NCBI RefSeq assembly: GCF_002571385.2
Contig: NW_019217955.1
Location: 243,384 to 307,383 of the forward strand
Direction: 5' to 3'
Length of the DNA: 64,000 bases
DNA from: Stylophora pistillata
Lineage: Eukaryota
In this document: positions 4,418 through 64,000 of the stretch, one piece after another
Numbering within the stretch: position 1 is the stretch's first letter
How the letters are laid out: each line of letters opens with the position of its first letter
Notes under the pieces: model-generated
Told to the model about the DNA's origin: nothing
Databases searched by the model: none
The model's input: only the letters and a program-made list of their open reading frames with translations
Position numbers and translations under genes: made by a program

Positions 4418-5927
4418 TGGGTTTTGGGACTACAACTACAGGGCTGACCCACTGAGATGGACTGTTTACTTTCTCAATGATGTCCATGTTCTTCAGTTCG
4501 TCTAATTTCTTCTCGATTTTGTCTCTAAGATTGAATGGTGGTCTGCGCAGAGGCTGAACCACAGGTGCCACATTCTCTTTTAACAACTTTATTCTCATTT
4601 TCAACTTAAGCTGATATCCTTTTAGCTTTCCTACTCCTGTAAAACAATCTTTGAATTCTTCTACAATGTCACTGCTTACAGAGTTTATGGAACTTCCTAT
4701 CTGAAGCACTCCAACCTTGATTGCTGAACCTCTCCCCAACAGGGGTTGTCCTGTCCCATCAATAACTACAAACTCTGCCTCACAAACTTTGTCACCCAGG
4801 ACTACTCTTGCTTGGAAACAACCGATAACTTCTAAAGGCACACTACTCCCATAAGCATACAGCTTCTTTTTGCACCTATAGGATTTGCATTCAATCCTCT
4901 GGGATTTTAGCTCCTCCCATGTTCCTTTATCAATCACATTAGTGCTTGCCCCAGAGTCAATAAGCATTCGCACAGAAATCCCTCCAACTAACACATTTAT
5001 CATCCCACCTGTAGTTCCTGTACCCACAGTGAATGCGTACTCGTCATCGTCGCTCTCAACTCTCAAGTTGTCATCATCAATCGAGTTCACATTCGATCTC
5101 CTTTTGTCTAGCACATCTCTTGTAGAAAATCTTTTGTTTCTGGTGACAATTTTGGTTTGGCAAACCTTAGCAAAATGTCCTATCTTGTGACACCTCTGAC
5201 ACTCGGCATTTCTTGCTGGACAACAACTGTCACGACTAAAATGACCTTCTCTGTCACAACGATAACATTTGGCTTTCGTTTCTCTTCCTTTGAACTGGAC
5301 AGCGGTTTCTCCACGTTCGATACGGTTAACTTGTTGACGATCATCTTCCACACCAGTCATCGTTTTCAAATGAATATCTACTGCCTCAAAAGATCGAGCG
5401 ATTTCTTGCCCCTTTTCCAGAGTTAGATGGGTTCCCTTTAACAATAGTTCCCGCCGCAAGTCGTCTGATCTGCACCTGTCGATGACCTGAATTGCGAATC
5501 GGCTCGCCTGCGTTATCCCAATTGCAATTTTCCGCTTGGTGTCGTAACCGAGTAATAAACTGATCGACCGTCTTTCCTGCCCCCTTTTGAGATTTCTGAA
5601 GGCGTGTCTTTCGTATGGCTCATTTAACCGCGCGCTAAAATGGGCATCAAGTGTGCGTAGGGCTTTCTGATATTCGCCAGCGTTGTCTTCACCTACATCT
5701 GCCGGCGGTCCTGGATCTTGCAGGGTTTCGAATAATTCTTGCACTTCACTGACAGCACAATGTAACAGCAAACCTTTTTTTCGAGCGCTGTTGGTGATTC
5801 CTCTCGCTAAGAGGTAATATTCAAAAGATTTTTTCCACTTTTTCCACCGAGGAGCAACTGAGGTAATCGCGCCTTTACAGTCGAACGGCAAAATTCCTCC
5901 AAATTCAACACTTGCCGCTGCCAACAT
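4359..5927 (-). pseudogene. gag: Gypsy gag-protease region
   Basis: Two CCHC knuckles (CYRCDREGHFSRDSCC, CQRCHKIGHFAKVC), aspartic protease LIDSGAS, and RT start SQWVSPVVVVPK. Confidence 0.92.
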
Positions 5928-16151: not shown

Positions 16152-19100
16152 ATGACGACAAAAATAGCAGTTAAGGACGCGGCTAAGCGACTGGGGAGAG
16201 TTTTGCTGAAGAACGAACCAAACTGGATTACTGGAGATTTAGGGAACTACGTGGACGATACACTCAAAAGCCAATTCCCTGCAGTGGCTTCGTGTGCAGC
16301 CCGCACGTGCGATGAGGTCAAAACTTTTAAGACTAAAGAAGAGCAAGGACCTGTTCAACAAAGCGACCTTTTAAAACCACTGTTGATGGATATCGCTCAA
16401 GAGGGCCTAAATTACGCTTTCCAAAAATGGATCCAGAAAAAGGAGAACCCTGAGAGGCATTCAAAGACGAAAAATCCGAAGAAAGTGATTGTGGTTGGAA
16501 CCGGAATGGCTGGGCTAGTGGCTGCATTTGAGCTGGCGCAAGTTGGACACGACGCGATAGTATTAGAAAGCCAGACGCGAGTAGGAGGCAGAGTTCACAC
16601 CCTTGGGGAAAAGGATGGTTTTGCAAAGGGACTCCACGGTGAGGGTAAGTATTGTGTACTGTAGTTGATTGATGGAGACCAACGTGGCTTTATTCTTCCT
16701 GTCTACTATATCCGTAATAACTGCTTTCGTAATCCTTTTGCATTTCTATTAATTTTATTTGCAGCTGGTGCCATGAGGTTACCATGTCTCCCTGACGCGA
16801 AGACCAAGACCCATTTCCTGACAGATTTTTATGCTTCTCAGAAGCGGTTCAATCTACCCTTGGCAGATTTTACCAACTATAGTGAAAAAGCTTTTCTCAA
16901 GTTTTATAACGAAGACGCTGTTCGTATAGAAGGTGAGCTTTATGATACATAAGTAAAATCTTCTGGTTAATGTTTGAAAGCGTCAAATGCCTTCCCTCGA
17001 GGTCAGATGTAGCTCAGGGTAGCCCTGCAGTTTAGCACGTTTATATCCCTGAGAGTGAAACTGAGTTTCAGAATTTGGGCTTGATGTTCTGAAGAGCAGT
17101 GGTCTGACCTCACAACACGACGCTGATTGGTAGATTTTTAAACGAAACAGTTACACTTACACCATTTAGTAGGTATGCAGCACAAAAACTGTTATATTTT
17201 GGAATGAAATGCTCACCATTTAAACACGTGGGTGAGGTAAGGCACCGAGAGAGGAAAGGGTCTTTATGACAATGTTCCCCTCTTAGTCAGGGGTAGTCCT
17301 GTGGTTAAGCAAGTCTATTTCGTTAAGAGTGAAATTCAGTTTCTAGAATTTGGGGCTCAATAAACTGAAGTGTAATGGCCTGGTTTAACAACAGGTCGCC
17401 CGCTTACAGCTAAAGGTAATTTCTAATTTGTGTATGCAACAGAATGGAATAAAGATCCGTTGACCTGGACGAACAAACTTTGGCTTGGATGGGATGCTAC
17501 CCTGAAAAAAACCGGAGTGAAGGACATCATGAGTATAGGTAAGATTAAAGGGCTGAAGCTGTCTAAGGTGGTTGTAAAGTTCATTTTTGCCATGCACCAT
17601 TAGTGTTGAGGCTATTCCTCAACAAGGTTTTATGTTTAGTCCGTTCCGTTCCTGATTTTTTTGTATGTCACGTTGACCACAATCCTTCAATAGTGATTTT
17701 AGTCGCTATCCTTTTTCGCACGTGGTGAGACGCTTGTAAAAGTTTAGGTACGTAAAACTGTTCCTTTTCTTTCGCTTACCGCCCGTCATCATGTGGTTTT
17801 TACGGCTCCCCGAGTCTCGTAATCTTTGATGGAAGGCGACCGGATCGTTTTGTAATTATTGGTATTCTTCGCCGTCATTAAACTCGTTGGTCGAAGCGCT
17901 GTTTTGTTATTATTCGACATCTTCGCCACTTTATGTGTCGGACCCGGATATTGTTGTAAGAAACAACATGTTTGTCATCGCTTCCTGCTGTGGAATTTGT
18001 GCCTATTTACGCTGTATATGACCTCAACTGGAGAATCGCCGTTTCATCAAAGAAAACCGCCGTTGTTCAATATTTGTGTCATGTCGCCACGTGGAATCAC
18101 AGGCGGCCCAGGCTCTGTCACAGGCTCTTTCGCAGTGGACCATTATAGAGTTTGTATGGTGGTTTAGTTGGACTTGCGTTTGAGCTCCGCAAATATAAAG
18201 TTGTGTGAAATAATCAAAGAAATAGTCTCACCTTCATACAGAGTAGTCTGTGCTGTTCCTGTCGCGATTTGAGGCCGTTTTGCTGTGTTTTAACTTCCTA
18301 CCACTACCAAATAAAAGGGGAGGTAGGAAAGCTCTGTCTCACACACGCTCGCCAAAATCGCTCGAAAAACACACTTCCATACTTCCCCTTGAATCGAAAC
18401 TTGGGAGCACGAAAGCCAAATAGTTACCGTTGGAGCGAGCTTTGGGTGTGTACCGGGATGCACAGTCTGGCATTTTCAAGTTTAAAGCTCTGCAGGCAGA
18501 AAAACCGTCCACCAAGCGAGGGGTGCTTTCGATCGTAAGTTCTTTGTTTGATCCACTAGGATTCCTTTCACCCTTTGTGTTTTCTGCCAAGCTTGTGCTG
18601 CAGGAACTCTGGAGAGATAAACTCCCTTGGGATCAGCAAGTTCCAGAACCTTACCTCTCACAATGGCAACGTTGGCTGGCTGAACTACCACATGTTATCG
18701 CCATTGATACCCCAAGGTGTTACAAGACTCAGTCATTTCACAACACATCGACTGTCCAGCTTCATAACTTTGACGACGCATCCAGACGCGGTTACGCACC
18801 AGTTTCATATTTGAGTTTCGTCAATGAAAAAATAGGGATTCATTGTTCCTTTGTCAAGAAAAAAACCCGCAATGCTCCCATTAGGGAGTGGACTATCCCT
18901 CGTCTTGAACTTCAAGCCGTAATATTAGCAGCCCGTCTGAGCAAGATAATATTGAAGGAACTCGATCTACCAGTAGATTAAACCTTCTTCTGGTCCGACT
19001 CAATGGCATCTTTACAGTACATCAAGAATGAAACAAGGCGTTTTCAAACCTTTGTCGCCAACAGTGCCACCGAAATCCTTGAAACAAGTCTTCTAGAGCA

Positions 19101-22100
19101 ATGGCATCAAATTCCCGGTGTCATAAACCCTGGTGATGATGATTCACGAGGTGTTAGTGCTCAATATTTTCACGTTGAATGTCGCTGGTGGTTAAGTCCA
19201 AAATTCCTTTGGGAACCTGAATGTGCGTGCCAAGTGTGCTAGTAAAGGATCTCCAAGATGACGACGTGGAACTACGGAAGTCACCAACTGTTATGCTCGT
19301 CTCACATGTACTGCAGATTGACACCTTGCTGCAGCGCTATTCATCGTGGTCCCACTTACTGAGAGTAATGTCGTGGGTGCTTCGTTTCGTAAAGAGAGTT
19401 CGAAATGAAACTCCAGAGTATCCTAAGTCAAGTACACTCAAGCTGGTAGAATTGCAGCAATCAAGTCGAGAAATTGTGCGGTTAGTTCAGCGAAGACATT
19501 TGCTAGAGGAGTACTTGTGTGTGAAAGAAGGCAGACAAGTGAAACGTCACAGCAAGTTACCTAATCTCAGTCCAATCTTGATTGACAATGTTATACGCGT
19601 GGGAGGTAGAATTCATCGCGCGCCAATCGCCTTTGAGGCCGCACACCCAATGATCCTTCCAAAGTACCTTCACGTTTCTGTGTTACTAGTTCGCTACTAC
19701 CACCATGTACTGGGCCATGCAGGCCGCGAACATGTATTATCCGTAATCCGTCAGCGTTTCTGGATCATGAGGGGAAGAGCTCTCGCACGCCGCGTTCGGG
19801 GTAGTTGTGTGAGCTGCCGCAGACGTAACTCGCATCCTCTTCAAGTTATGGCTGATCCTCCCAAAGAGAAGCTAGTACCTTACCAGCCTCCGTTCACATT
19901 CACAGGTCTGGATTTTTTCGGACCGTTTTACGTGAAGCGAGGTCGCAGTGCAGGGAAAGTGTATGGCTGCATATTCGTGTGCTTCAATAGCCGAACAGTA
20001 CATATTGAAGCTTTCGTTCGATTCATCTCAGTGCGTGATCGCCCAAAGGAGATATGGTCGGAAAATGGCACAAATTTTACTGGTGTTCAGAAGGAACTTC
20101 GCCTGTCGGTTCAAAATCTGAACGAAAAAACGGATCAGGAGTGACTTACATTCTCGTGAGGTAGAATGGTACAGCTGTAAACTACCAGAGTGGCGTTTTC
20201 AACCTCGTGCCGCAGGCCACATGTCAGGAGTTTGGGAAAGGCTCAGTAGAAGTGTTAGGAAAGTTATGAAGGCTGTTCTCGGTAGTCAGGGTGCGGTGGT
20301 TAGTTTGGAAACGTTGCGTACAGTATTTGCTGAAGTCACATCAATCTTGAACAGTCGTCCTATTTGTCCTTCCAGTGACGATCCAAGTGATTTATAGCCG
20401 CGAACTCCAAATAATCTTCTGCTACAATGCCGAAACCTATTTGTATCTGCTTGAGTTTTCGCTGAAAGGGACTTGTACTCCCGTAAACAATGGAGACACG
20501 CTCAGTTCATTGCTGATTGTTTCTGGTCTCGTTAATATCTAGAATATGTTCCAACATTACAGCAGCGCAACAAGGGGTTACTGAACAAACGGAACTTAGC
20601 AGTTACCGACGTGTTCCTTGTTGTGGACAATACCGTGCCCAGGTGCCACTGGTTGTTAGGTCGTGTAACAAGGGTTTTTCCGGGTGAAGACTTATGTGTA
20701 CGCACAGTAGAAGTGGAGACGAAGAGCTCGAGACTTGTTCGACCCGTGACGAAGTTGTGTCTTCTTGAAGAGGCAGTATAATAAACCAAGAGAAGATCTG
20801 AACGCTGTGAACATTGACCTACCAAAACATTGAACACTGAACACTTAGGTTGATTTCATATTTCTTAACTGTTAGCTTTTCTCAGCCCTATTCCCCAGGA
20901 TGTTGAGGCTATTCCTCCACAAGGTTTTATGTTTTAGTCCGGTCCGTTCCTCACTTTTTTCATTTGTCACGTAGACCACAATCTGTCAATAGTAATTTTA
21001 TTCGCTATCCTTTTCGGATGTGGTGAAACGCTTGTAAAAGTTTAGCTACGTAAAACTGTTCCTTATCTTTCGCTTACAGCCCTTCATCATGTGGTTTTTA
21101 CGACTCCCCAAGTCGCGTAATCTTTGATGAAAGGGTGACCGGATCGTTTTGTAAATATTGGTATTCTTCGCCGTCGTTAAACTCGTTGGTCGAAGCGCTG
21201 TTCTGTTATTATTCGACATCGCCGCTTCATGTGTCCGAGCCGGACAATTAGTGCATCAGCCACAGGAGGCGAAAAACTTCAAGCCCCTAAAATCCCCTTG
21301 GTACTATGGTATCCCTGACGTTTGTACACATCACTCCCAAAACACGTCTACCTTACGCTTAGCACACATTGGAATTCCACGAAATTTCGCAGCCCGGGAA
21401 AGAGCAAAAACGTGTGAAATATTAAATAGGAATTTACGGAGGGAAAAGTGTTCATAACTCAGGACGGTTAATGTGTCATGCTGGAAACCATCGGAATGAC
21501 AGACCGAAAATTTGAATTTGAATTGCCTTTGTTCGGCACCTAAAATACGACGCATTAAAGATAATTAAAAGAGAAAGATTTCTTCCTATGAAAGGAAAAA
21601 TACTATCCGATGTCTTTAGAACAGGCGGATTGACATAGTTGCAAAATTGATCTACTAGACTGAAAATGGCACAGTTTAAAATGTATTTTGAAATGGCTTT
21701 GTCGAAGGCCCATTTGATCGTATTCATATGCTGATTTGTGTCATAGAAATTATAACTATTATCATCATTGTCGTCTAGATGGTATGTTTTGACTGTAACT
21801 TTCTCTTTGTCCAATTGCAGATGAATATTATAATCGCACCACTCGGGTGGTAACAAATCAGCTGCTTTATTTGCTTAACGATCCCAGCGTTAAACCAAGT
21901 GATGCCTGGAATCAGTGGATTGATGTGTGGAGTCAGTTTCCACTCGATGGGTTCCTACAAAGTACTTACGAAGCAGTCAAGACAAATGTTGAGAAAAAAG
22001 TCCCCAGGGAAAAACACAGCATCTTTGTGACAAGCCTCAAAGAACTCAAGAAGTACCTTCCTTGGCCTGAAGCCGCCCTCACTGCCTACTCTGTCTTCAA

Positions 22101-23025
22101 TTATACACAGCAACTTGATCAAAGCCTGGTGCGATACCTCCGAGAACAACTGGGACAGTGGTGGTCACCAGACATGCACTGCATCAAAGGCGGGATGTCT
22201 TTGTTGCCAGAAGCCTTCACCCAAAAAGACAATGGAGGCTGGAATCCCGACGTTTCCCTTCACGATAAAATTCACTTTAACCGTACAGCCAATGAGATCA
22301 TCTACAAATTTTATGAAGGTGATACTGAAAATAATCATGTGGTGGTAAAAGGCTACTTCAGCAACAGCAGACAGCCTTTTGAGATCGAAGGAGATGCTGT
22401 TATAGTGGCAACTCCAATCAACATTCTTAGACAGATCAAGTATACGCCCTCAGAACACACCGAGCGTCCCCCACAGGATTTCTACAAGGCCATAGAAGAC
22501 ATCTATAGCGGTCCAGCAACCAAACTATTCATACAGACTAAGACCAGATTCTGGGAGAAAGACGGCATTAAAGGAGGCTTCTCAAAAACAGATCTTCCAA
22601 TCGGGCAGCTCCATTATTCAAGCAACGTCACTGGAGAGCATCCTGGAGAAAAAGGCATTCTGTTGGTTTATACGTGGAAGACAGAAGCCTTACTATTTGG
22701 CTCCCTGGATCCTACTACTGCTCTTCACGAGGCAGTAAAGCAAATAGCCACAATCCACCCAGAGATCAAGGACCAGGTTGAAACGGGAGCCGTCTGTGCA
22801 TGGTACAACCAACCAACAGCTCAGGGAGCCTATGCCCTGCTCAAACCCACCCAATACCAAAACGTCCGGTACCTCATGAAATACCCCATGGCTAACATCT
22901 TCTTTGCTGGTGAGGGTCTCTCGTTTGCTTCGGGATGGATTCAGGGGGCCTTGGAGTCTGGTCTACGAGCAGCTTATCAGTTTTACATTCGCAACGAGGG
23001 CGGATGGTGCCCCAAATTGAAATGA
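16152..23025 (+). CDS. Flavin-dependent L-amino-acid oxidase family protein, copy 1 (653 aa; exons 16152-16644, 16765-16932, 17443-17538, 21821-23025)
   Basis: Three phase-1 GT-AG introns give a 1962-nt open frame. Motifs: VVGTGMAGL (GxGxxG), [36 protein letters not shown]...[14 protein letters not shown]. Confidence 0.92.
17604..21246 (+). mobile_element. BEL/Pao LTR retrotransposon, internally deleted, in intron 3 of LAAO copy 1
   Basis: LTRs at 17604-17950 and 20901-21246; perfect TSD ATTAG. ORF pieces [58 protein letters not shown]. The site is empty in copies 2 and 3. Confidence 0.95.
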
Positions 23026-34543: not shown

Positions 34544-37500
34544 ATGATGACGACAAAGACAGCCGATCGGAACGCCGCCAAGCGATTGGGTAAGGTTTCG
34601 CTAAAGAACGAACCAAACTGGATCACTGGGGATCTGGGGAACTATATGGATAATGCACTCGAAAGCCCATTGCCTACGGTGGCTATGTATGCAGCCCGCA
34701 CGGTAAATGAGGTTGAAGCGTCTAAGATTACAGGAAAGCAAAAACCTGTTCAACAAAGCGATCTTTTAAAACCATTGTTGATGGATATCGCTAAAGAGGG
34801 CCTAAATTACGCTTTCCAAAAATGGAGCCAGAAAGAGGAGAACCCTGAGCGACATTCAAAGACGAAAAATCCGAAGAAAGTGATTGTGGTTGGAGCTGGA
34901 ATGGCTGGGCTAGTGGCCGCATTTGAACTTGCGCAAGTTGGACACGAGGTGGTAGTACTAGAAAGCCAGACGCGAGTAGGAGGTAGAGTTCACACCCTTG
35001 GGGAAAAAGACGGTTTTGCAAAAGGACTCCACGCTGAGGGTAAGTACTGTAGTCGATTGGCGGAGACTGACGTGGTTTTATTCCTCTCGTAAACTATCTG
35101 TAATTAATGGCTTCGTTACCTTTCTGCAACTCTCTTAATTTCAATTGCAGCTGGTGCCATGAGGTTACCATGTCCTCCTGACGCGGAGAACAAGACACAT
35201 TTCCTGACGGATTTTTATGCTTCTAAGGAACGGTTCAGCCTACCCTTGGCACATTTTGCCAACTACAGTGACAGAGCTTTTCTAAAGTTTTATAACGAAG
35301 ACGCTGTCCGTGTAGCAGGTGAGCTTTATGATACATTAATAAAATGTACTCGTTAATGTTTCAACGCGTCAAATGTCTCCCCTCAAAGTCAAATGTAGCC
35401 TTTCCGAGCCCAGGGTAGCACTGTAGTTTAGCATGTCTATCCCGCTAAGAGTGATACTGATTTTTAGAATTTGAGCTTCATGAACTGAAGAGCAGTGGAC
35501 TGACCTTACAACGCGAGGCTAACTCATTTAATAAGTTTATGGTGAAAAATGTTATATTTTGGAATGAGATACCTAGTACCCAATTCGTGTATTTAACCAT
35601 CTATACACCTGGGCCATGAAAGGCAGTGAGAAAGAAAAGAGTCATTACAAATTCGTGTATTTTACAGAATGGAATGAAGATCCTTTGGAACGGACGAACA
35701 AACTTTGGCCTGGATGGAATGCTACCCTAATTGACAAAGGCGTGCACGACATCACAAGTATCAGTAAGTTTCCAGCACTGCAGCTGACTAAGTTTACAAA
35801 CTTCATTTTAACCATGTATAGTTAGGATATTCTACAGCCGCAGCTGGAGGGTAAAAAATTTTCAAACCTCTAAAATCCCCTTGGTATTAAGATATCTCTA
35901 ACTGTTGCACACATCACTCTCAAAGCTCATCTTTTTTGCACACATCGGAATCCCACGAAATTGCACAGCCCAAGGAAAAGCTGAAAGAAGGTGGTCAAAA
36001 CTCTGGATAGTTAATGTTTATGCCGGAAACAATCGGAGCGACTCAGCAAAAATGCGATCGAGTTTTAATTGCCTTTGTTCGGCACCTAAAGTGCACCGCA
36101 TCTAAAATTGATTAAAAGAGAAAGATTTCTTGATATGGGGGGAAACCACCACCCGATGTCTTTAGAACAGGCGAATTAACATAACAGCGACAAATTTGAT
36201 CTACTGGACTGAAAATGGCCTATATCAAAAGAATTTTGAATTAGCTTTTTCTGGGGCCCATTTGATCATATATGCGTGCGCGAAATATAAATTATTATTA
36301 TTGTCTAGATGGCATCTTTGACTCTAACTTTATTTTCATCTAACTGCAGATGCATATCATGATCGTACCACTCAAGTGATAACAGATCAACTGCTAAATT
36401 ACCTAAACACACCTGGCGTTGACCCATGTGTTGCCTGGGATCAGTGGATTGATCTCTGGAGTCAGTTTCCAGTCGATGGGTTCCTCCAAAGTACTTACGA
36501 AGCCGTAATGACAAAAGTCCAGGAAAAAGTGTGCGAGAGGACAGAACTCAAGAAAAAACACGACATCCCTTTGACAAGCCTTGAAGAGCTCAAGAAGTAC
36601 CTTCCTTGGCCTAATGCAGCTATCACTGCCTTCTCTGTCTTCAACTATACACCGGACCTTGATATAAGCCTTGTGCAACATCTCCGAGATCCCCTGGGAC
36701 ATTGGTGGTCATCAGAAATGCATTGCATCAAAGGCGGGATGTCTTTGTTACCAGAAGCCTTCACCAAAAAAGACAATGGAGGCTGGAATCCCGACGTTTG
36801 CCTTCACGAAAACATTCACTTCAATCGTACGGTCAAAGAGATAAAGTACAAATTTTATGAAGGTGATACTGAAAATAATCATGTGGTGGTAAAAGGCTAC
36901 TTCAGCAACAGCAGACAGCCTTTTGAGATCGAAGGAGATGCTGTTATAGTGGCAACTCCAATCAACATTCTCAGACAGATCAATTACACACCCTGTCAAC
37001 ACACCGACCCTCCCCCAAAAGAATTCCACAAGGCCATAGAAGACATCTTTACCAGTCCATCAACCAAACTGTTCATACAGACTAAGACCAGATTCTGGGA
37101 GGAAGAAGGCATTAAAGGAGGCTTCTCAAAAACAAATCTTCCAATCGGGCAGCTCCATTATCCAAGCAACCTCACTGGAGAGCATCCTGGAGAAAAAGGC
37201 ATCCTGTTGGTTTACACATGGAAGACAGAAGCCTTACTCTTCGGTTCCCTGGATCCTATTACTGCCCTATATGAGGCAGTAGAGCAAATAGCCACAATCC
37301 ACCCCGAGATCAAAGGCCAGGTTGAAACGGGAGCTGTCTGTGCGTGGTACAACCAACCAACCGCTCAAGGAGCCTTTGTCTTGCTCAAACCCACACAGTA
37401 CCAAAACGTCCGCTACCTCCAACAACACCCCTTGGATAACATCTTCTTTGCTGGTGAAGGCCTATCGTTTGCTTCGGGATGGATTCAGGGGGCCCTGGAG

Positions 37501-37560
37501 TCTGGTCTACGGGCAGCTTATCAGTTTTACATTCGCAACGAGGGCGGATGGTTCCCTTGA
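34544..37560 (+). CDS. Flavin-dependent L-amino-acid oxidase family protein, copy 2 (656 aa; exons 34544-35039, 35151-35318, 35668-35763, 36350-37560)
   Basis: Same internal exon sizes (168 and 96 nt) and phases as copy 1; 1971-nt open frame. [17 protein letters not shown] and [15 protein letters not shown] are intact. Confidence 0.93.
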
Positions 37561-51169: not shown

Positions 51170-54100
51170 TCTTTGTATTATGCCAAGTTCTGATTACAAT
51201 AAACGACAGACGCCGCATTAAGCCACTGAAGCATCCTTTGTCATTCATTAAGTTCTGTAGAGAACATACATTGAATTGAATCCCAGGCCGCAAGCCCGCC
51301 CATGCAGCTTCGAGCCTCGTGTTTTTAAAAGTCGCTTGGGTTCCCATTTTGCTTGCTCAAATAAAACAGGATAAATAAGTGATGAGAAACTACAGGGCAA
51401 TCGAATCTTTTTTGGAGGAAAACGTCATCGAAGCGTAATTTCTTGACTAATCGAGAAAACAGTAATTTGTTTTGCGTTTTATCTGTCATACTATTGATAA
51501 CTAACGTTTTTTTCAAGTGCCATAGCAAAGTTAACGCAAAAAGCCTATTGGACCGCATTTGATTGGTGGCTACACACCATCAACCTTTCAAAATCAAACA
51601 AAAGTATTCATGGCTTTTTGACTTTCACTTTAAAACATTTTGCATTCTTCCTTGTTGCCTGATTGTACACGATCACAAACGGTAAGAATGTACAATATGA
51701 GATTGTTTTTCTACTAGCAATCAAAAAATCAATCCCCAAACGCCTAACAAGAAACATCTTTGACTCCTAATCACTAAATTTTGAAGCTTGACTCCGCATT
51801 ATTCCATTCACAGTTCATCCATACTACAGTTAATCGTGCAGGTGAGTTTAGAAGGAAACGGCATCAAAATAAACAATCATGGCTTGAAGTGATTCTGAAT
51901 TATACGACGTGGTAGTGGTCGGTGGTGGTCCCATGGGATTATCCACAGCATACCAATGCGCCGTTAAAGAAGAAAAGAAAGTAATGGTCATCGAGCCGTT
52001 TTTAATTTGGAAACACATATGGATCAAGTCCCGGGTTTGGTCGCCAATTTCGTATCTGCTACTCAGAGCGTTATCTGTGCCAACTGGCTATCAAGTCAAG
52101 TAAAGAATGGGATAAACTCATGCAAGAGTTGAAGAATAGCTCCCTTGTGGATCGAACAGGCTGCATTTGGTTTGGCGATGCTACCCGAATGCAGCGAGCC
52201 GCTATGTTCCAATAGTGGGTAGGTCCACCTTAGAGGAATAAACTTAGATGTCAAACAGACATCTTACCATACAAATCCAAATGCGAAATGATTCAGTGAA
52301 GAAATGTCGCAGTCAGGTTTTAATCAATGAGTGTACGTAGAGAATGACATTTTGGATTTTATTTCTAGTTACTCATATGTTTACTTCCCTTATATTATAC
52401 AGTCTTTCTACTGTCTAAAAAATAGAAATGTTCTCAATAAACGTCACACCAATTGAAAATGAATCTCAAAAACGCCCGTGGGAACGTGATTTAGCATTTG
52501 TGTTCTAAGAAATACCTGCGGCTACTATTGTTTCAATTGTTTGTAACTTTTCCCTAAAAGCTACTCCCAATCAAGATCATGGTGATCTTGCTGCGTTTCT
52601 AGTTAAGAAGGGCAATTCGTAAAATTCATTAGCAGTTGCTGTATTGTGAGAATGCATGTCACAGCTAATATTTCAATATACTATACCGTTTATTCATGCA
52701 TAGCTTATAACCCAAATTATCGTCAATGAATGAATGAATGATGAGGCCCTCCACCTTTGCAAGATATACAGATTGTCTTTCAAATCATGCAGAAACACCA
52801 CACCACAAAGTTTTTTATAGGAACGCTGATTTTTAAGCACACTTTTTCCAATTGTACTGCTAGTGATACTACTGTACGAAATTATAGTCAAATGTTATTC
52901 TGCCCGTTTAGTTTAACATTTCTTAAATAGATGATTCAGTATTTAGTAATCACAGGAGTGTCATTCCAATTATAATTCATTGTATCTATTTCTGTGGACA
53001 TTTGTTAATCTCTTAGTTTTGGTCTTATTCCCTCAGGTATTCCATTCCTAAGGTAAATTTTTTGAAGAAACGGAACACTTTCAAAAACGTTTTTGCGTTG
53101 TTGTATGACGCATCATGTAAGCTTCGAGTTAGGCTTTGTATTATGCCAAGTGTCGGATGAAAATAAACGACAGACACAACCCTACGCCCTTCAAATATCC
53201 TTTGTCATTCATGAAGTTATTTACAGAACAAAAATTGAACTGAAGCCGCGTTCGCAAGTCCACTAAGAAGCTTTAAGCCTCTCCTTGCTTAGAGTCGCTC
53301 GACTTTCCACCCTGCTTGCACAAATAAAACAGGATGGATAGATGATGAAAGAAATACAGGGTTACATCCTTAATTAGACGTAAACGTTATCGAGGCGTAG
53401 TTTCGTGACTGTTTGGAACAACCTCAATGTGTTTGCTCTTTTGCGATTTCAGATCTCACAATGATCATTTACGTAATTCAAGTGTCATAGCAACATATGC
53501 TCTGAATGCTTGTAGGAGACATTTGATTAACGCAATTTGCGAATTATGCCAAGTTCTGATTAATATATAAATGATAGACGCCACGCTAAGTCACTAAAGC
53601 ATCTTTTGTCATTCATGAAGTTATTTACAGAACAGAAATTGAATTTAGGGCGCGTTGGCAAGTCCGCCATGCAACTTTGAGCCTCACCTTGTTTAGAGTG
53701 GCTCGAGTGTCCACCGTGCTTGCAAAAATAACACAGGATAAGTAAGTAAGGAAAGAACCACAGGGTTACAGCCTTTATTGGACATAAAAATTATCGGAAC
53801 GTTTTTCTTGACTGATTGAGACAACCTCAATGTGTTTGCTCCTTTGCGGTTTCATCTCACAATGATCATTTACGTAATTCAAGTGTCATAGCAACTTATG
53901 CTCTGAATGCTTGTAGGAGGCATTTGATTGGTGGCTACTCACTTCTTGACCTGTCAAATTCAAACCAAAGTGATTATGGCTTTTTCAATTTCATGTTAAA
54001 GCTCCCTGCTTCTGTTGCAACCGATTGGATTTGGTAATTCAAAGAGAAGCTCTTGACTACCTTGCATCCAGCGGGATTGATGTTACAACCGGTAAGGACA

Positions 54101-55740
54101 TACCAGTAAGAGCCGTTTGTTTCAGTCCAGGGAGGGGTCTCTGACGCTTGCATAGAAAGTTCCATTAGAGTCCGAATTTAACCTTAGAGCTCTAATGTAG
54201 ACTCGTCGGCGGTTCCTAAGATCACAGACTGTTCCGAAGCAATGTGTTTCGAATGCAATGTGTTCCGAAACAATCAGCAACAGCAAAAGTTAAAAATGTA
54301 GAGGTATATTATTTTGAGGGCAAAGATGTAATGAACATGAAGAAACTTTTAAAGACGCCTCGTCTAATTCTAGCATAGGGAAACTACAATCTTCCTTTTT
54401 CGGATCTCTTCTCTCTTACTTTTGACCATTTCCTCTGGCCAACGTCTTAATGGGAATTTGTTTGACAGTAACACTGCTGCGCAAATTGTTATTCCTCCCG
54501 TTCAATTTAATGTTCTTATTGTAGACTACATTTTGTAATTGTGGGAGTGCCATTCTGATTCACTGTACTTCATCAACATTGTCATGTGGCTGATTGATTC
54601 ATGCAGCTCTTATTCGTTTGGTATTTCATCTGATTCATTTTCTGAAATAAATATTTCTAAGAAATGAAGCACTTTTGAAAGACTTTGTGGTGCAGTTGTA
54701 TGATGTGCTTGAGAGGCTTTATTCTGGAGCGTTCGGGATAAAAGCGCGCTTCACGGTTTAAAAAATTAATGGGCACCTATGGCCCAGGTATCATAACAAC
54801 TCTTGCTGTAAAAAGCTTGTAGGAGGCATTTGATCGGTGGCTACTCACTTCTCCACCATACAAAATGAAACCAAATTGATTATGGCTTTTTCAATTTCAC
54901 ATTACAACTTCCTGCTTTCGTTGCAACAGTTTCTGGAGTAAATATTTCTAAGAAATGAACCACTTCTTAAAGACTTTGTAGTGCAGTTGTATGACGTGGT
55001 TTATAAGCTTTATTCTGGAGCATTTGTGGTAGAAGCGCATGTAAACGGTTCCAAAGGCTTAACGGCATGGCATCTATGACGCAATTTGCTATTATTCCAG
55101 TTAGGCTTTGTAGGTGTTATGCCAAGTATTGGGTGAAAATAAATGACACACACCACCCAAAGCCCTTCAAACATACTTTGTCATTCATGAAGTTATTTAC
55201 AGAACAGCAATTGAACTGAAGCCCCGTTCACAAGTCCCCCAAGCAGTTTTAAGCCTCTCCTTGATTAGAGTTTCGACTTTCCACCGCTCGACTTTCCACC
55301 CTGCTTGCACAAATAAAACAGGATGGATAGATGATGAAAGAAATACAGGGTTACATCCTTAATTAGACGTAAACGTTATCGAGGCGTAGTTTCGTGACTG
55401 TTTGAGACAACCTCAATGTGTTTGCTCTTTTGCGATTTCAGATCTCACAATGATCATTTACGTAATTCAAGTGTCATAGCAACATATGCTCTGAATGCTT
55501 GTAGGAGACATTTGATTAACGCAATTTGCGAATTATGCCAAGTTCTGATTAATATATAAATGATAGACGCCACGCTAAGTCACTAAAGCATCTTTTGTCA
55601 TTCATGAAGTTATTTACAGAACAGAAATTGAATCAAACAAAAGTATTCATGGCTTTTTGACTTTCACTTTAAAACATTTTGCATTCTTCCTTGTTGCCTG
55701 ATTGTACACGATCACAACCGGTAAGAATGTACAATATGAG
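51170..55740. repeat. Module copies flanking the NikD-like pseudogene and gene
   Basis: Markers a(c/a)acaggat(a/g) at ~51362, 53328, 53731 and 55317. A near-identical ~340-bp duplication links 53301-53644 and 55290-55633. Confidence 0.85.
51879..52233 (+). pseudogene. Internally deleted pseudogene of the NikD-like oxidase
   Basis: ATG GCT TGA (stop at codon 3) and a frameshift near 52000. The 5' and 3' ends are fused at TACC (52182-85), removing 1026 nt of the intact gene. Flanks are paralogous to 55630-55917 and 57298-57915. Confidence 0.95.
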
Positions 55741-55917
55741 ATTGTTTTTCTACTAGCAATCAAAAAATTAATCTCCAAACGCCTAACAAGAAACATCTTT
55801 GACTCCTAATCACTAAATTTTGAAGCATGACTCCCCATTATTCCATTCACAGTTCATCTATACTACAGTTAATCGTGCAGGTGAGTTTAGAAGGAAACGG
55901 CATCAAAATAAACAATC

Positions 55918-57297
55918 ATGGCTTCAAGTGTTTCTGAATTATACGACGTGGTAGTGGTCGGTGGTGGTCCCATGGGATTATCTGCAGCATACCAGTGCGC
56001 TGTAAAAGAAGGAAAGAAAGTAATGGTCATCGAGAAGTACAAATTTGGAAACGCATGTGGATCAAGTCCCGGGTTTGGTCGCCAATTTCGTATCTGCTAC
56101 TCAGAGCGTTATCTGTGCCAACTGGCTATCGAGTCAGGAAAAGAATGGGATAAACTCATGCAAGAGTTGAATGATAGCTCCCTTGTGGATCGAACAGGCT
56201 GTCTTTGGTTTGGCGATGCTACCGTCGAAAGCAGTGAGGGCAACATCGACAAGGCGGTACAGAACCTTAAAGAGCTGGGTGTAGGTGACTACGACTTACT
56301 TGAAGGCAAAGAAGCAATTCAGAGCGATGAGCGGTTTACCTTCATTTCGGATGCGGTGAACGACATCGATAAACCAAAAGCTCTCTATGTTGGTGATGGG
56401 GGTACCATAAATGTTCCTGCCGTTATCGAAGGCCTTTGCAAGATGCTGAAACGTTCAAGTACAGCTCAACTTGTGGAAAATGCGCCTACCAAATGCATTG
56501 ATTACAGCTTGGATGATGAGGTGAGAGTGTGGATCGATAAGCAGCCGTTTTGCATCCGGACCAAGAAAGTGATCCTGACGCCTGGAAGCTATATTAACGA
56601 CCTCTTATCAGCTCTAACACCCACCTTCACGGAAAGGATCAACCTCACGATCTATCTATGGAGCTCCACCTACTTCATTCCTTCTTGGCCTTCAGCTTCA
56701 AAGGAGAAGTGGCCTATCTGGTACTTCTTCGGTCAGCCGAACGAGAACAACCTAAATCTATACTACGGTTTCCCAAGCGAAAAGAAGCGGCCTGACTACG
56801 TCAGAGTTGCCCCAGCATTCACATCAAGCGAGCGATTTGACTTCAAGCTTTATCCACCAGACATTAGCGACAGACCACTTGATCAAGACGCCCTAAAGTT
56901 CACTGCTGACTTTGTGAAGAAATCAATGCCTTCTCTAGTCCCTCAACTATTAATAGAAGAGCAGTCAACATGCCTTGCTGGCTTTGCTGAATCCAGTGAT
57001 AGTGATGACGACGGTGTCGGTTTCGTTTTGGATTTTCTGCCAGACGCACGCAGCAATAATCGAATCCTTCTTTTTACAGGTGGATGGGGTATGAAGTTTG
57101 TACCTGTTATTGGAAAGGTACTTGCAGATTTGGCGATTAAAGGAACGACAGAGTACAGCAAACTCATTAAGCCATGGAATATCAACCGTGGTGTGCTCGT
57201 TAAAGAGAGAGGTAGCACCAACACGGCTCAGCAATCAGTAAAATGTACCCGATTGCAGCGAGCCACTATGTTCCAAAAGTGGGTAGGTCCACCTTAA
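55918..57297 (+). CDS. NikD-like covalent-FAD amino/imino-acid oxidase (monomeric sarcosine oxidase family), 459 aa, intronless CDS
   Basis: YDVVVVGGGPMGL, GSSPGFGRQFRICY, GCLWFGD..SEGNI, DGGTINV, NLYYGF, STCLA (Cys352, predicted 8alpha-S-cysteinyl FAD), GWGMKFVPVIGKVLADLA. Start context aatcATGG; AATAAA at 57301. Confidence 0.9.
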   Translation: MASSVSELYDVVVVGGGPMGLSAAYQCAVKEGKKVMVIEKYKFGNACGSSPGFGRQFRICYSERYLCQLAIESGKEWDKLMQELNDSSLVDRTGCLWFGDATVESSEGNIDKAVQNLKELGVGDYDLLEGKEAIQSDERFTFISDAVNDIDKPKALYVGDGGTINVPAVIEGLCKMLKRSSTAQLVENAPTKCIDYSLDDEVRVWIDKQPFCIRTKKVILTPGSYINDLLSALTPTFTERINLTIYLWSSTYFIPSWPSASKEKWPIWYFFGQPNENNLNLYYGFPSEKKRPDYVRVAPAFTSSERFDFKLYPPDISDRPLDQDALKFTADFVKKSMPSLVPQLLIEEQSTCLAGFAESSDSDDDGVGFVLDFLPDARSNNRILLFTGGWGMKFVPVIGKVLADLAIKGTTEYSKLIKPWNINRGVLVKERGSTNTAQQSVKCTRLQRATMFQKWVGPP

Positions 57298-57914
57298 AGG
57301 AATAAACTTAGAGGTCAAACAGACTTTTTGCCAAACAATTCCAAACGCGAAATGAGGTAGTGAAGAAACGTCCTAGTTTTAATCAATGAGTGTACGTTGA
57401 GAATGACATTTTGGATTTTATTTCTAGCTACTTATATGTTTACTTCCCTTATATCATACAGTCTTTCTACTGTCTGAAACTAGTAATGTTCTCAGTAAAC
57501 GTCGCACCAGTTGAAAATGAATCACAAAAACGCCGGTGGGACCATGAATTAGCATTTTTGTTCTGAGAAATACCTGAAACTATAGTTGTTTTAAATTGTT
57601 TTGTACCTTTTCCCTAAGCCCCCCCCCCCCAGTCTAGATAATGGTGATTTTGATGGGTTTCTAATTAAGAAGGGCGTTTTGCAAAAGTTATTAGCAGTTG
57701 CTGATTTTGTATTGTGAGGATGCATATCACAGCCAATGTTCCAATATACTATACCGTTTACTCATACATAAAACGTTGCCCAAATTATAGCCAATAAATG
57801 AATGGTGAAGCCCTCTACTTATGCAAGACATTCAGATTGTCTTTCAAATCATGCAGAAACACCACACCACAAAGTTTTATATTGGAACGCTGATTTTTAA
57901 GCACACTTTTCTAA

Positions 57915-58860
57915 TAGTCCTCGTCTAATTCTATCCTAGGGAGACTACAGTATTCCTTTTTCGGATTTCCTCTCTTTTGCCTTTGACCATATCCTATGGT
58001 CTGTGTCTTAATGGAGATTTGTCTGAGAGTAACACTGCTAGACAAAATGTTATTCCGACCGTTTATTTAAACTTTCTTCCTATAGACTGCATTTTGTAAT
58101 TAGGGGAGTGTTATTCTAGTTCATTGTTTTTCGTTTACATTGTGAAGTGTTCGTCTGGTATTCCATCTGAATCACTTTCTGGAGTAGCTTTTTCTAAGAA
58201 ATGAAGGACTTATCTTAAAAGACTTATTAGTGCAGTTGTATGATATGTTTGATAGGCTTTATTCTGGAGCGTTCGTGATAGTAGCGCGCTTCACGGTTCA
58301 AAAATTTAAGTGGCACCTATGGCCCAAGCATCATAACAACTCTTCCCGTAAACGCCTTGAGGAGGCATTTGATCCGTAGCTACTCACTTCTCCACCCGTC
58401 AAAATCGATCCAAAGTGATTATGGCTTTTTCAATTTGACATGATCATACCTTCCTGCTTTCATTGCAACAGTTTGGATTTCGTTATTCCAGAAATGAAAT
58501 GGTTGATTGGTTCATGCAGCTCCTATTCTTCTTCGTTCATGAAGTTCTTTACAGAACAGAAGTATAATTAAAGCTCGGGTCGCAAGTCCGCCATGCCGCT
58601 TTGAGCCTCACCCTGTTTAGAGTCCCTCGAGTTTCCACCGTACTTGTCCAATTAAAACAGGATAAATAGGTAAGTGAAAGAACTACGGTGTTACAACCTT
58701 AATTAAAAGTTATCATTGTCAGGACGTAGTCTCATGACTTTTTAAGACAACCTTAATGTGTTTACTCCTTTGCGTTTTCATCTCTCACAAGGATTAGCTA
58801 CGTAATTGGCAGTCTGCATCACCCAGAGCAAAGGTTAAAAATTTGGAGGTATATTATTCA
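57915..58860. repeat. Module copy upstream of LAAO copy 3
   Basis: Contains cctcgtctaatt, ggagactaca, ggggagtg and aaaacaggataaat blocks. It ends in ttggcagtctgcatca...aaaggttaaaaattt, as upstream of copy 2. Confidence 0.85.
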
Positions 58861-63069: not shown

Positions 63070-64000
63070 TTAACGTTGGCTAGTAACTGACGTAGTGTGG
63101 TTATGGGTTTTCGGGAGACGCGGATATTGAAGGGTTGTAAGATGCGCGAGATGTTCTCAGACATGCCTTTTATGTACGGTATGGTTGCTGTAGTCGTAGG
63201 AGTTGCGGTGTCGTTTGTTTCGGTAGTAGTAGTGGGTCGGTCAGTGTTTCGTCGGATGAAGTGGTCGTTGTAGTTGATCTTTGAAAAAACACGGTAAAAG
63301 AATTTGTTCTCGTCGGATAAGCTTTTTGTCGTGTTGCATACTAGTTGCTCGCATCGTGTTAGAGTTTTGATAGTTGTGACTTTGTGTGATGTAGGGTTGT
63401 AGGATGACTCGTCTAGTAATCTGTCGGTGTGTGTCGGTTTCCTCTAAACTGTTGTCCGTAGCGAGTTGTCGTCATGGCTTACCAGACAGTCTAGAAAAGG
63501 AAGTTGCCATTTTCTTCGACTTCTCTGGTAAACTGTATGTCAGTGTTTGCCCGTTGAGGTGGGGTAAATGCGTCGATTTCGTCGTGTCCTAGGGCGGTGA
63601 ATGTACCGTCAACGTAGCGTAACCAAAGCGGTATCGTGTGTGGGCAAGTCGAAAGGGCCCGTTCCTCGATGTTCTGCATCACAATTTCTACCACAACAAC
63701 AGAAACCTGAGACCCCATGGCTGTGCCGTGTAACTGTTTGTAGTGTTTATCGTTGTACTGAAAGTAAGTTGACGTTAGGCAAAGGTTCAGTAAGTCCGCA
63801 ATGTCGTCTGTCGGTAGCGTTAGTGGGTCGGTAGATTGTCGGAGTGCAGTTTCAGTACATTGTAGTGCCAATTGAAGTGGAATACTTGTAAACAACGATT
63901 TCACATCAAATGACAGTATTTTGTAGTCGTCAGGCATCATTTACTGCACTAATAGCCTCTATTCGGCACCTAAAATGCACCGCATCTAAAAATAATTTAA

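Follow-up and report, generated by a model that had tools for sequence, protein, structure and literature searches.

What kind of flavin oxidase is encoded by an intronless gene lying among spliced genes in a stony coral, and how did it come to be there? The gene lies in a 64,000-nucleotide window (the whole stretch of DNA analysed) of the Stylophora pistillata genome (NCBI RefSeq assembly GCF_002571385.2, contig NW_019217955.1, positions 243,384 to 307,383 of the forward strand). The initial annotation, made from the sequence alone, considered the product to be NikD-type rather than PIPOX/MSOX-type, and suggested either an old bacterial-to-animal transfer or a patchily retained lineage. The observation itself is confirmed by our analysis. 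The interpretation is supported only in part, since the assignment to the NikD type and the integration of the gene in the coral genome hold, while the data do not decide between the two proposed origins. The features discussed below are collected in Table 1.

Table 1. Features of the locus, in coordinates of the 64,000-nucleotide window.
Position	Strand	Feature	Details
16152..23025	+	LAAO copy B	Spliced, at least 4 exons; corresponds to the annotated protein 'L-amino acid oxidase-like [Stylophora pistillata]'; a Pao retrotransposon remnant lies in an intron
34547..37560	+	LAAO copy C	Spliced, at least 4 exons
51592..52846	+	Tandem, internally deleted duplicate (pseudogene)	51592-52198 matches 55631-56238 at 94.6%; 52182-52846 matches 57246-57910 at 84%; about 1 kb of CDS missing, remaining coding part frameshifted
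55852..57918	+	Approximate extent of unspliced transcript	Long polyA RNA-Seq contigs colinear with the genome: 55852-57918, 55852-57858 and 55177-57862
55918..57297	+	CDS of the NikD-type FAD oxidase	Intact, intronless, 459 aa
57793..57798	+	AATAAA polyadenylation-type signal	60-125 nt before the ends of the RNA contigs; a second AATAAA at 57301 follows the stop codon
59826..64000	+	LAAO copy D	Spliced; last exon beyond the window at window-equivalent 64240-65460; 653-aa product; a reverse-transcriptase remnant lies in an intron

Identity of the oxidase

The closest solved relative of the coral protein is NikD of Streptomyces tendae (PDB codes 2oln, 2olo, 2q6u and 3hzl), the FAD oxidase that converts piperideine-2-carboxylate (P2C) to picolinate, a four-electron oxidation, in nikkomycin biosynthesis. 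In a phmmer search against PDB sequences NikD was found with an E-value of 6e-41, compared to 4e-14 for MSOX and 3e-13 for MTOX, although identity to NikD is only about 28-31%. Each of the motifs listed in the initial annotation aligns with its NikD counterpart (2oln/2q6u): GWGMKFVP with GWAFKFVP, STCLA with STCLA, LWFGD..SEGNI with LWFGD..NEGQI, DGGTINV with DGGTIDV, and NLYYGF with NLFYGF. The fold prediction agrees with the sequence: the AF2 model has a pLDDT of 90.3 and, when compared with solved structures by Foldseek, NikD occupies ranks 1-4 with a TM score of 0.90. A search of the ESM Atlas returned only generic DAO clusters. The coral protein is about 60 residues longer than NikD, with a poorly conserved, low-confidence C-terminal tail.

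The signature residues of NikD were assessed across 92 animal-type sequences. Cys352, equivalent to the Cys321 that carries 8-alpha-S-cysteinyl FAD in NikD and hence the predicted covalent-flavin site, is present in 92 of 92. Trp390, equivalent to the Trp355 lying over the flavin, is present in 91 of 92, whereas this column is His in 12 of 12 MSOX/MTOX-type sequences. Tyr283, Glu107-Gly108, Arg58 and Lys393 are invariant or nearly so, and correspond respectively to Tyr258, the Glu101-containing insertion, which is absent from MSOX/MTOX, and the Arg53/Lys358 pair, whose carboxylate-binding role has been described (PMC6222107). One correction is necessary, in that NikD Asp276 is not conserved. 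The coral protein has Ala300 at this position, and the column is Ala in 86 and Gly in 6 of the 92 animal-type sequences, but Asp in 48 of 61 bacterial loci and in 7 of 9 Streptomyces NikD-clade sequences. In MSOX/MTOX the column is His.

The possibility that the gene is an ordinary animal PIPOX/sarcosine-oxidase paralog that lost its introns, for example by retroposition, was considered, since monomeric sarcosine oxidase, N-methyltryptophan oxidase and peroxisomal PIPOX share with it the Pfam family (DAO), the overall fold, the covalent-FAD Cys and the Arg/Lys pair. This explanation is effectively refuted. The protein scores 100 bits against a curated cut-off of 480 for TIGR01377 and 116 bits against 257 for NF008425, and so falls far below the NCBIfam cut-offs for MTOX and soxA_mon. 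Its motif is GWGMKF rather than GHGFKF and, as the initial annotation stated, it ends in VGPP and therefore lacks a PTS1. In trees with MSOX/MTOX-type bacterial sequences as the outgroup, and containing neither metazoan PIPOX nor the coral's own PIPOX-type genes, the NikD-type sequences are all separated from MSOX/MTOX with SH-aLRT values (from quick searches) of 96-100. Moreover, the genome has two separate, multi-exon PIPOX-type genes, on C209 and C17 in our contig numbering.

An integrated and transcribed coral gene

Bacterial contamination or an assembly artefact might be suspected of an intronless gene with bacterial-like relatives, but can be excluded. The gene lies on a 585-kb contig with annotated coral genes, between spliced coral genes and retrotransposons, and the GC and GC3 of its CDS equal those of the neighbouring LAAO exons. 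The start context, with A at -3 and G at +4, is of the Kozak type. Contigs from polyA RNA of three studies cover the CDS colinearly, confirming the absence of an intron, and depth upstream is near zero; since these contigs are assembled from RNA libraries they cannot give expression levels or exact transcript ends. The gene is present in runs from 7 studies. The tandem pseudogene mentioned in the initial annotation is real and is now better defined as a decayed, DNA-level duplicate lying 3.7 kb upstream. The eukaryotic start context, the AATAAA and the contrast with spliced neighbours, all previously claimed, were likewise borne out.

Association with L-amino-acid oxidases

The most informative feature of the locus, not mentioned in the initial annotation of this gene although noted separately, is its association with L-amino-acid oxidase (LAAO) genes. 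The gene lies inside a same-strand array of five LAAO genes. In six other assemblies NikD-like and LAAO homologs also appear to share contigs, as inferred from the identical sizes of the contigs encoding them, and one of these is a relative only 49% identical. All 10 long relatives tested are DAO+Amino_oxidase fusions, in both domain orders, and they include the Dictyostelium protein Q54EW2, a protein of the choanoflagellate Diaphanoeca and bacterial examples. In 47 of 77 bacterial loci the gene is fused to, or followed on the same strand by, an amine-oxidase gene. Elsewhere the partner differs: in actinomycetes it is a DegT-type (NikC-type) aminotransferase (6 of 6 tested), and in two gammaproteobacterial loci an amino-acid dehydrogenase. 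All three partner types make a 2-oxo acid from an alpha-amino acid.

The partners are not, however, orthologous. The commonest bacterial partner belongs to a different, divergent amine-oxidase subfamily (about 24 bits to the coral LAAO), and the LAAO domain of the nearest fusion does not find the coral LAAO among its top 120 relatives, finding instead Bacillales YobN-type and vertebrate LAAOs. Co-transfer of the LAAO gene with the NikD-like gene is therefore not supported. The coral LAAO is of a classical type, matching snake and vertebrate LAAO (136 bits) better than Trichoderma lysine oxidase (89 bits), and nothing shows that it prefers lysine.

It could be argued that the gene works independently of the LAAO genes, as a stand-alone H2O2-producing or catabolic amine oxidase that happens to lie in the array. 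The tandem arrays and retroelements show that the region is dynamic, the flanking LAAO genes are 2.5-18 kb distant and no shared transcript was seen. We consider this very unlikely, since chance adjacency does not explain the fusion in both orders, or adjacency, of the same two families in many unrelated lineages, nor their inferred sharing of contigs in six other assemblies.

Evolutionary origin

Hexacorals, octocorals and a hexactinellid sponge form one fully supported clade, on a long stem (0.8-1.2 substitutions per site), which lies inside a mostly bacterial radiation in an unresolved polytomy with bacterial and fusion lineages. Identities to the coral protein fall in species-tree order, from 80-87% for close hits, through 49-55% for octocorals and 46% for the sponge, to 31-37% for bacteria, so that the gene is old within animals. 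Among the minority of the 135 hits that bear an organism name, the only animals are octocorals and a sponge, with no bilaterian. A single clade of all named eukaryotes is rejected by the AU test (p 4e-7), whereas a clade of animals plus the choanoflagellate is not (p 0.097).

Ancient transfer from bacteria is thus plausible, and the likeliest origin, but is not proven. Vertical descent from a holozoan or older eukaryotic ancestor that had the fused form, with loss in most animals, remains a possible though less favoured alternative. It draws support from the fused choanoflagellate homolog, from the AU result for Holozoa and from the species-tree order of identities within animals. On the other hand, in the free trees Diaphanoeca nests among Bacteroidota-type sequences and carries the divergent bacterial partner type, and its sequence comes from a transcriptome that could include prey bacteria. 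The rejection of a clade of all named eukaryotes, the lack of a named bilaterian hit and the intronless state of the gene across the clade also count against this alternative. The gene is a well-documented candidate for ancient gene acquisition in animals.

Predicted function

The explanation we favour, with moderate confidence, is that the gene encodes a cytosolic-looking flavoprotein oxidase, having no signal peptide as well as no PTS1, which most likely acts as the second enzyme of a two-step module with the LAAOs encoded around it. In this view the LAAO would remove the alpha-amino group of a basic amino acid, most likely L-lysine, the resulting 2-oxo acid would cyclise spontaneously to P2C, and the NikD-type enzyme would oxidise that cyclic imine towards picolinate, with release of H2O2 at each step. 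The reference pathway is that in which NikC/SanL converts lysine to P2C and NikD converts P2C to picolinic acid (PMC4021061, PMC11446937), and alpha-oxidation of lysine is described as giving P2C (PMC7698073). What the analysis demonstrates is the family assignment, unspliced transcription, integration in the host genome, the gene neighbourhood, the fusions and the alternative partner enzymes; the catalytic activity, the substrate (lysine/P2C), the product (picolinate rather than a dihydro intermediate) and any later use, such as N-methylation to homarine, are inferred. No methyltransferase, ligase or cationic amino-acid transporter was found in the window or beside LAAO copy E of the array, and the NRPS or CoA-ligase context is absent.

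A tentative alternative is that the enzyme is indeed coupled to the LAAOs but differs in its chemistry, performing a single two-electron oxidation and stopping at a dihydropicolinate, or acting on another LAAO product, for example pyrroline-2-carboxylate from ornithine to give pyrrole-2-carboxylate, or an arginine-derived keto acid. The uniform replacement of NikD Asp276 by Ala or Gly in the animal clade suggests that the chemistry, especially of the second oxidation, may differ, and the long stem of that clade and the lack of specific resemblance of the coral LAAO to lysine oxidase point in the same direction. Furthermore, a NikD homolog in another pathway is proposed to stop at a partly oxidised P2C (PMC11446937). 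Against this, the other active-site signatures of NikD are kept, and the only characterised family member uses lysine-derived P2C.

A more speculative possibility, which we regard as doubtful on present evidence, is that corals and sponges make picolinate from lysine using only two O2-dependent flavoenzymes, an LAAO and a NikD-type oxidase of bacterial ancestry. The gene pair would then be the long-missing genetic basis of the picolinate unit of homarine (N-methylpicolinate), an abundant osmolyte and signalling compound of marine invertebrates, and the same cassette would be an unrecognised, widespread picolinate route in Bacteroidota, Oxalobacteraceae and protists. No genes are currently assigned to this synthesis: in the literature searched, a 2026 paper on homarine catabolism cites only a 1982 shrimp study for biosynthesis, and no description of this gene pair in corals was found. 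The locus provides a concrete, testable candidate pathway for picolinate, and possibly homarine, in reef corals.

NikD has been treated as a specialised enzyme of actinomycete antibiotic pathways. Our results show instead that NikD-type oxidases form a large family repeatedly coupled to one of three different amino-acid-deaminating enzymes, that the LAAO-coupled form is widespread and uncharacterised, and that early-branching animals (corals, octocorals and a glass sponge) carry an intronless member, expressed and lying next to LAAO genes in Stylophora pistillata. NikD and the coral gene are alike in being coupled to an enzyme that deaminates an alpha-amino acid, but the coral partner is a flavin LAAO rather than the PLP aminotransferase NikC, and the host is an animal. 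Animal LAAOs acting on lysine include Aplysia escapin (ref. 28 of PMC7698073). Escapin turns L-lysine into P2C-type products and H2O2; it is secreted and has no known downstream oxidase, whereas the coral LAAOs show no obvious signal peptide and are linked to a NikD-type gene. The Dictyostelium 'putative bifunctional amine oxidase DDB_G0291301' (Q54EW2, 1080 aa) and the similar, uncharacterised fusions of bacteria and Diaphanoeca combine the same two enzyme families in one protein, while the coral genes are separate and the coral protein does not group with that of Dictyostelium, a joint clade being rejected. The octocoral and sponge orthologs are named by NCBI after this Dictyostelium protein, and the relationship described here explains why they are labelled 'bifunctional amine oxidase'.

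Sequence comparison and predicted fold

The open reading frame is intact and encodes 459 amino acids. Pfam recognises a single DAO domain (PF01266, E 5e-30), while the best NCBIfam models, MTOX and soxA_mon, score only 116 and 100 bits against cut-offs of 257 and 480, respectively. Among all PDB sequences the best matches are the NikD entries 2q6u, 2oln and 3hzl (E 6e-41, 144 bits), with MSOX (4e-14) and MTOX (3e-13) following at a considerable distance. The initial annotation had proposed NikD-type rather than PIPOX/MSOX-type motifs for this protein, and every segment that it cited lines up in the alignment with NikD. Counting along that alignment reproduces the known landmarks of the enzyme: Cys321 falls in STCLA, Trp355 falls in GWAFKF and Tyr258 is the one position where the wild-type chain and the 'Tyr258Phe' chain of 3hzl differ. 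An AlphaFold2 model, built on an alignment of 54 sequences, is confident (pLDDT 90.3, pTM 0.91), and a Foldseek search with it places the four NikD entries first (E 3e-36, TM 0.90), ahead of MSOX at 3e-30.

Residue-level comparison was made across 92 animal-type sequences, bacterial NikD-type sequences and 12 sequences of the MSOX/MTOX type. By every signature except the position of NikD Asp276 the protein is therefore NikD-type, and that one difference defines the animal clade. The observation made in the initial annotation thus holds, and is extended by the results below.

Occupancy of signature positions, numbered as in the coral protein and, after the slash, in NikD.
Column (coral/NikD)	92 animal-type sequences	Bacterial NikD-type sequences	12 MSOX/MTOX-type sequences
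Arg55, Arg58/Arg53, Trp268, Tyr283/Tyr258, Cys352/Cys321, Lys393/Lys358	92 each	Conserved	Arg, Tyr, Cys and Lys kept
Glu107/Glu101, Trp390/Trp355	91 each	Conserved	His at the Trp column in all 12; Ser-Glu-Gly insertion absent
Ala300/Asp276	Ala 86, Gly 6	Asp in 48 of 61 loci, in 7 of 9 Streptomyces NikD-clade sequences and in 29 of 36 fusions	His in 10 of 12 (MSOX His269, named in the title of PDB 1l9c)

An expressed gene of the coral genome

The window corresponds to positions 243384-307383 of contig C172 (585,169 bp) in an assembly of 397.6 Mb. A paralog of the neighbouring gene is the NCBI protein 'L-amino acid oxidase-like [Stylophora pistillata]', which lies on this contig and matches one exon within the window at 100%. 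The stretch is present in sequencing runs from 7 studies, including polyA RNA-Seq runs labelled 'coral metagenome'. Contigs from the polyA RNA runs of three studies are colinear with the genome over the gene, with no joint or indel inside the CDS, and there is almost no depth at 54600-55000. Of seven SNPs seen in the CDS, four are synonymous and three conservative. The start codon has A at -3 and G at +4, an AATAAA lies at 57793, and the GC and GC3 contents of the CDS (46.6 and 47.3%) equal those of the LAAO exons. The genome holds no other full copy of the gene, the nearby pseudogene being a DNA-level tandem duplicate with its middle deleted. It does, however, have two canonical multi-exon genes of the PIPOX/MSOX type, each with at least 7-9 exon hits to TIGR01377.

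RNA contigs in three runs contain joints that lead back from beyond the gene to its upstream region. In those individuals the gene unit seems to be followed by another copy of its upstream region, pointing to a tandem repeat of about 2.9 kb that the assembly may have collapsed or that varies between genotypes. In addition, a single 58-nt contig from a further run (X6) skips 340 nt inside the CDS, with ends CT..AC (GT..AG on the minus strand), and could represent a spliced antisense transcript or an artefact.

Coordinates of the features described. Plain numbers are window positions; G000 is the coral assembly, and labels beginning with L are individual loci.
Feature	Coordinates	Strand	Remarks
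NikD-type oxidase CDS	55918-57297	+	No intron
Polyadenylated RNA contigs	55852-57918		Colinear with the genome; one extends from 55177
AATAAA	57793		
Pseudogene, 5' part	51592-52198		94.6% to the 5' flank plus the first 321 nt of the CDS
Pseudogene, 3' part	52182-52846		84% to the CDS end plus the 3' UTR
Backward joints, runs X10 and X2	58110 to 55177		
Backward joint, run X14	57918 to 55005		226 other letters between
Skip in contig of run X6	55999-56340		
LAAO-like gene array	C172, 224-349 kb	+	Five genes; the NikD-type gene lies between the third and the fourth
LAAO copy A (L005)	G000:C172:224237-227322	+	Upstream of the window
LAAO copy B	16152-23025	+	At least four exons
Exon matching the NCBI protein	21820-23022		100%
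LAAO copy C	34547-37560	+	At least four exons
LAAO copy D	59826-65460	+	At least four exons
Pao/Gypsy-type remnants (peptidase A17, integrase, RT)	18430-20144 and 63491-63940		Inside introns of LAAO copies B and D
Gypsy-like element	1992-5927	-	Larger than the intronic remnants
SLC6 (sodium:neurotransmitter symporter) first exon and rhodopsin-type GPCR genes	L090:4145-4573, L090:9338-10000, L091:1-528, L091:8291-9322		About 10 kb beyond LAAO copy E
Intronless Amino_oxidase ORFs (509 and 490 aa)	G000:C6:2020222-2021664 and G000:C190:104498-105760	- and +	Full length
PIPOX/MSOX-type genes	G000:C209:373092-380731 and G000:C17:797149-802092	+ and -	Multi-exon
Glu/Leu/Phe/Val-type amino-acid dehydrogenases	L051:6861-7958 and L065:3958-5037		Two gammaproteobacterial MAGs
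M61 glycyl aminopeptidase (two loci) and saccharopine dehydrogenase (one locus)	L020:11222-13045, L024:10933-12765, L021:11087-12310		Bacteroidota

Genomic surroundings

The LAAO-like genes of the array were located by a Pfam Amino_oxidase search of the genome, and copies B to D were delimited by mapping the full-length proteins. Copy A hits the Amino_oxidase model in several short pieces in different frames and may be a degraded copy. The remainder of the window is retrotransposon debris. The transporter found beyond copy E is not of the cationic amino-acid type. The coral LAAO is a classical LAAO, scoring 136 bits to snake and vertebrate LAAO structures and 89 bits to Trichoderma L-lysine oxidase. 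Elsewhere in the genome the two further Amino_oxidase ORFs score much higher to Pfam PF01593 than the array genes do; they are a different amine-oxidase lineage and possibly other acquired genes.

Relatives and the association with LAAO

A word-indexed search found 135 relatives. These comprise many sequences at 80-87% identity, often with two or three per contig, which indicates tandem arrays, octocorals (Dendronephthya, Xenia and Paramuricea) at 49-55%, the glass sponge Oopsacas at 46% and bacteria at 31-37%. The ENA gene calls in this collection are plain ORFs, since LAAO hits from the same assemblies consist only of the 390-aa last exon; full-length calls of 460 aa on megabase contigs therefore show that the NikD-type gene is intronless across the clade. 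In six other assemblies NikD-type and LAAO hits fall on contigs of exactly the same size (2,772,247; 418,056; 679,630; 220,791; 117,398; and 873,566 bp), the last of these belonging to a relative only 49% identical.

An exhaustive search of representative sequences (1808 hits, 61 below 1e-30) revealed many proteins of 800-1250 aa. All ten of those tested are fusions of DAO and Amino_oxidase domains, seven in one domain order and three in the other. One is Dictyostelium Q54EW2, 'putative bifunctional amine oxidase DDB_G0291301', another comes from the choanoflagellate Diaphanoeca grandis and another from a Thermoanaerobaculia bacterium. Among 77 named bacterial loci carrying the GW..KF.P motif, an amine-oxidase gene is fused to, or directly follows, the NikD-type gene in 47, a lower bound since some loci end at the gene. 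In Bacteroidota an M61 glycyl aminopeptidase follows the cassette in two loci and a saccharopine dehydrogenase lies next to it in one, weak hints at peptide or lysine metabolism.

The loci without an amine-oxidase partner are mostly from actinomycetes, and one of them, L056, is a close NikD relative (E 1e-123). All six actinomycete loci tested have a DegT-family aminotransferase ending just before the gene, which is the nikC-nikD arrangement, and NRPS-sized ORFs often lie downstream. As a third kind of partner, two gammaproteobacterial loci have an amino-acid dehydrogenase directly upstream instead. The aminotransferase, the dehydrogenase and the oxidase all convert an alpha-amino acid to its 2-oxo or imino acid. 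This is non-orthologous displacement of one upstream step, and is the strongest argument that NikD-type enzymes in general act on the deaminated, cyclised product. In the characterised case, lysine 2-aminotransferase gives P2C and NikD gives picolinic acid (PMC4021061, PMC11446937), and alpha-oxidation of lysine likewise gives P2C (PMC7698073).

Taken together, the analysis shows that the gene encodes a NikD-type oxidase and not a PIPOX, that it is host-encoded, expressed and intronless, and that it is part of a conserved LAAO/NikD-type module whose fused and adjacent forms are widespread and uncharacterised. The proposed catalytic function, leading from lysine to P2C to picolinate, is on the other hand inferred from sequence and gene context, and a link to homarine is a hypothesis only.

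Phylogeny and origin

Trees of 141 and 79 sequences were built with IQ-TREE (LG+C20, quick search, SH-aLRT support), with rows chosen by greedy identity filtering, all named sequences kept, and metazoan PIPOX left out because the exons of spliced genes were not joined. Both trees separate the NikD-type sequences from the MSOX/MTOX-type outgroup (support 96 and 100), and both recover a single animal clade (100) on a long stem (0.8-1.2), within which an anthozoan subclade (97) holds the coral and the octocorals. The sister of the animal clade is unresolved, being a polytomy with the fusion P0159, with P0151, with a clade of oxidase-first fusions, with a clade containing Dictyostelium, and with a clade containing Streptomyces NikD, Bacteroidota and Diaphanoeca.

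In AU tests a clade of animals plus Diaphanoeca is not rejected (delta lnL 31.5, p 0.097), whereas a clade of animals plus Diaphanoeca plus Dictyostelium is rejected (delta lnL 245, p 4e-7). The eukaryotic copies therefore have more than one origin, and the animal gene either predates the coral-sponge split or moved between those lineages. The LAAO partner shows no sign of co-transfer. The interpretation offered in the initial annotation, that the intronless CDS suggests horizontal origin, is supported only in part: an ancient bacterial origin is likely but is not demonstrated, and ancient transfer is a plausible route. A contig labelled as archaeal (locus L017; OZ250170.1, Nitrosopumilus sp. 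MAG) carries the NikD-type plus amine-oxidase pair, about 35% identical to the coral protein, and reflects either a transfer into Thaumarchaeota or a mislabelled or misbinned record.
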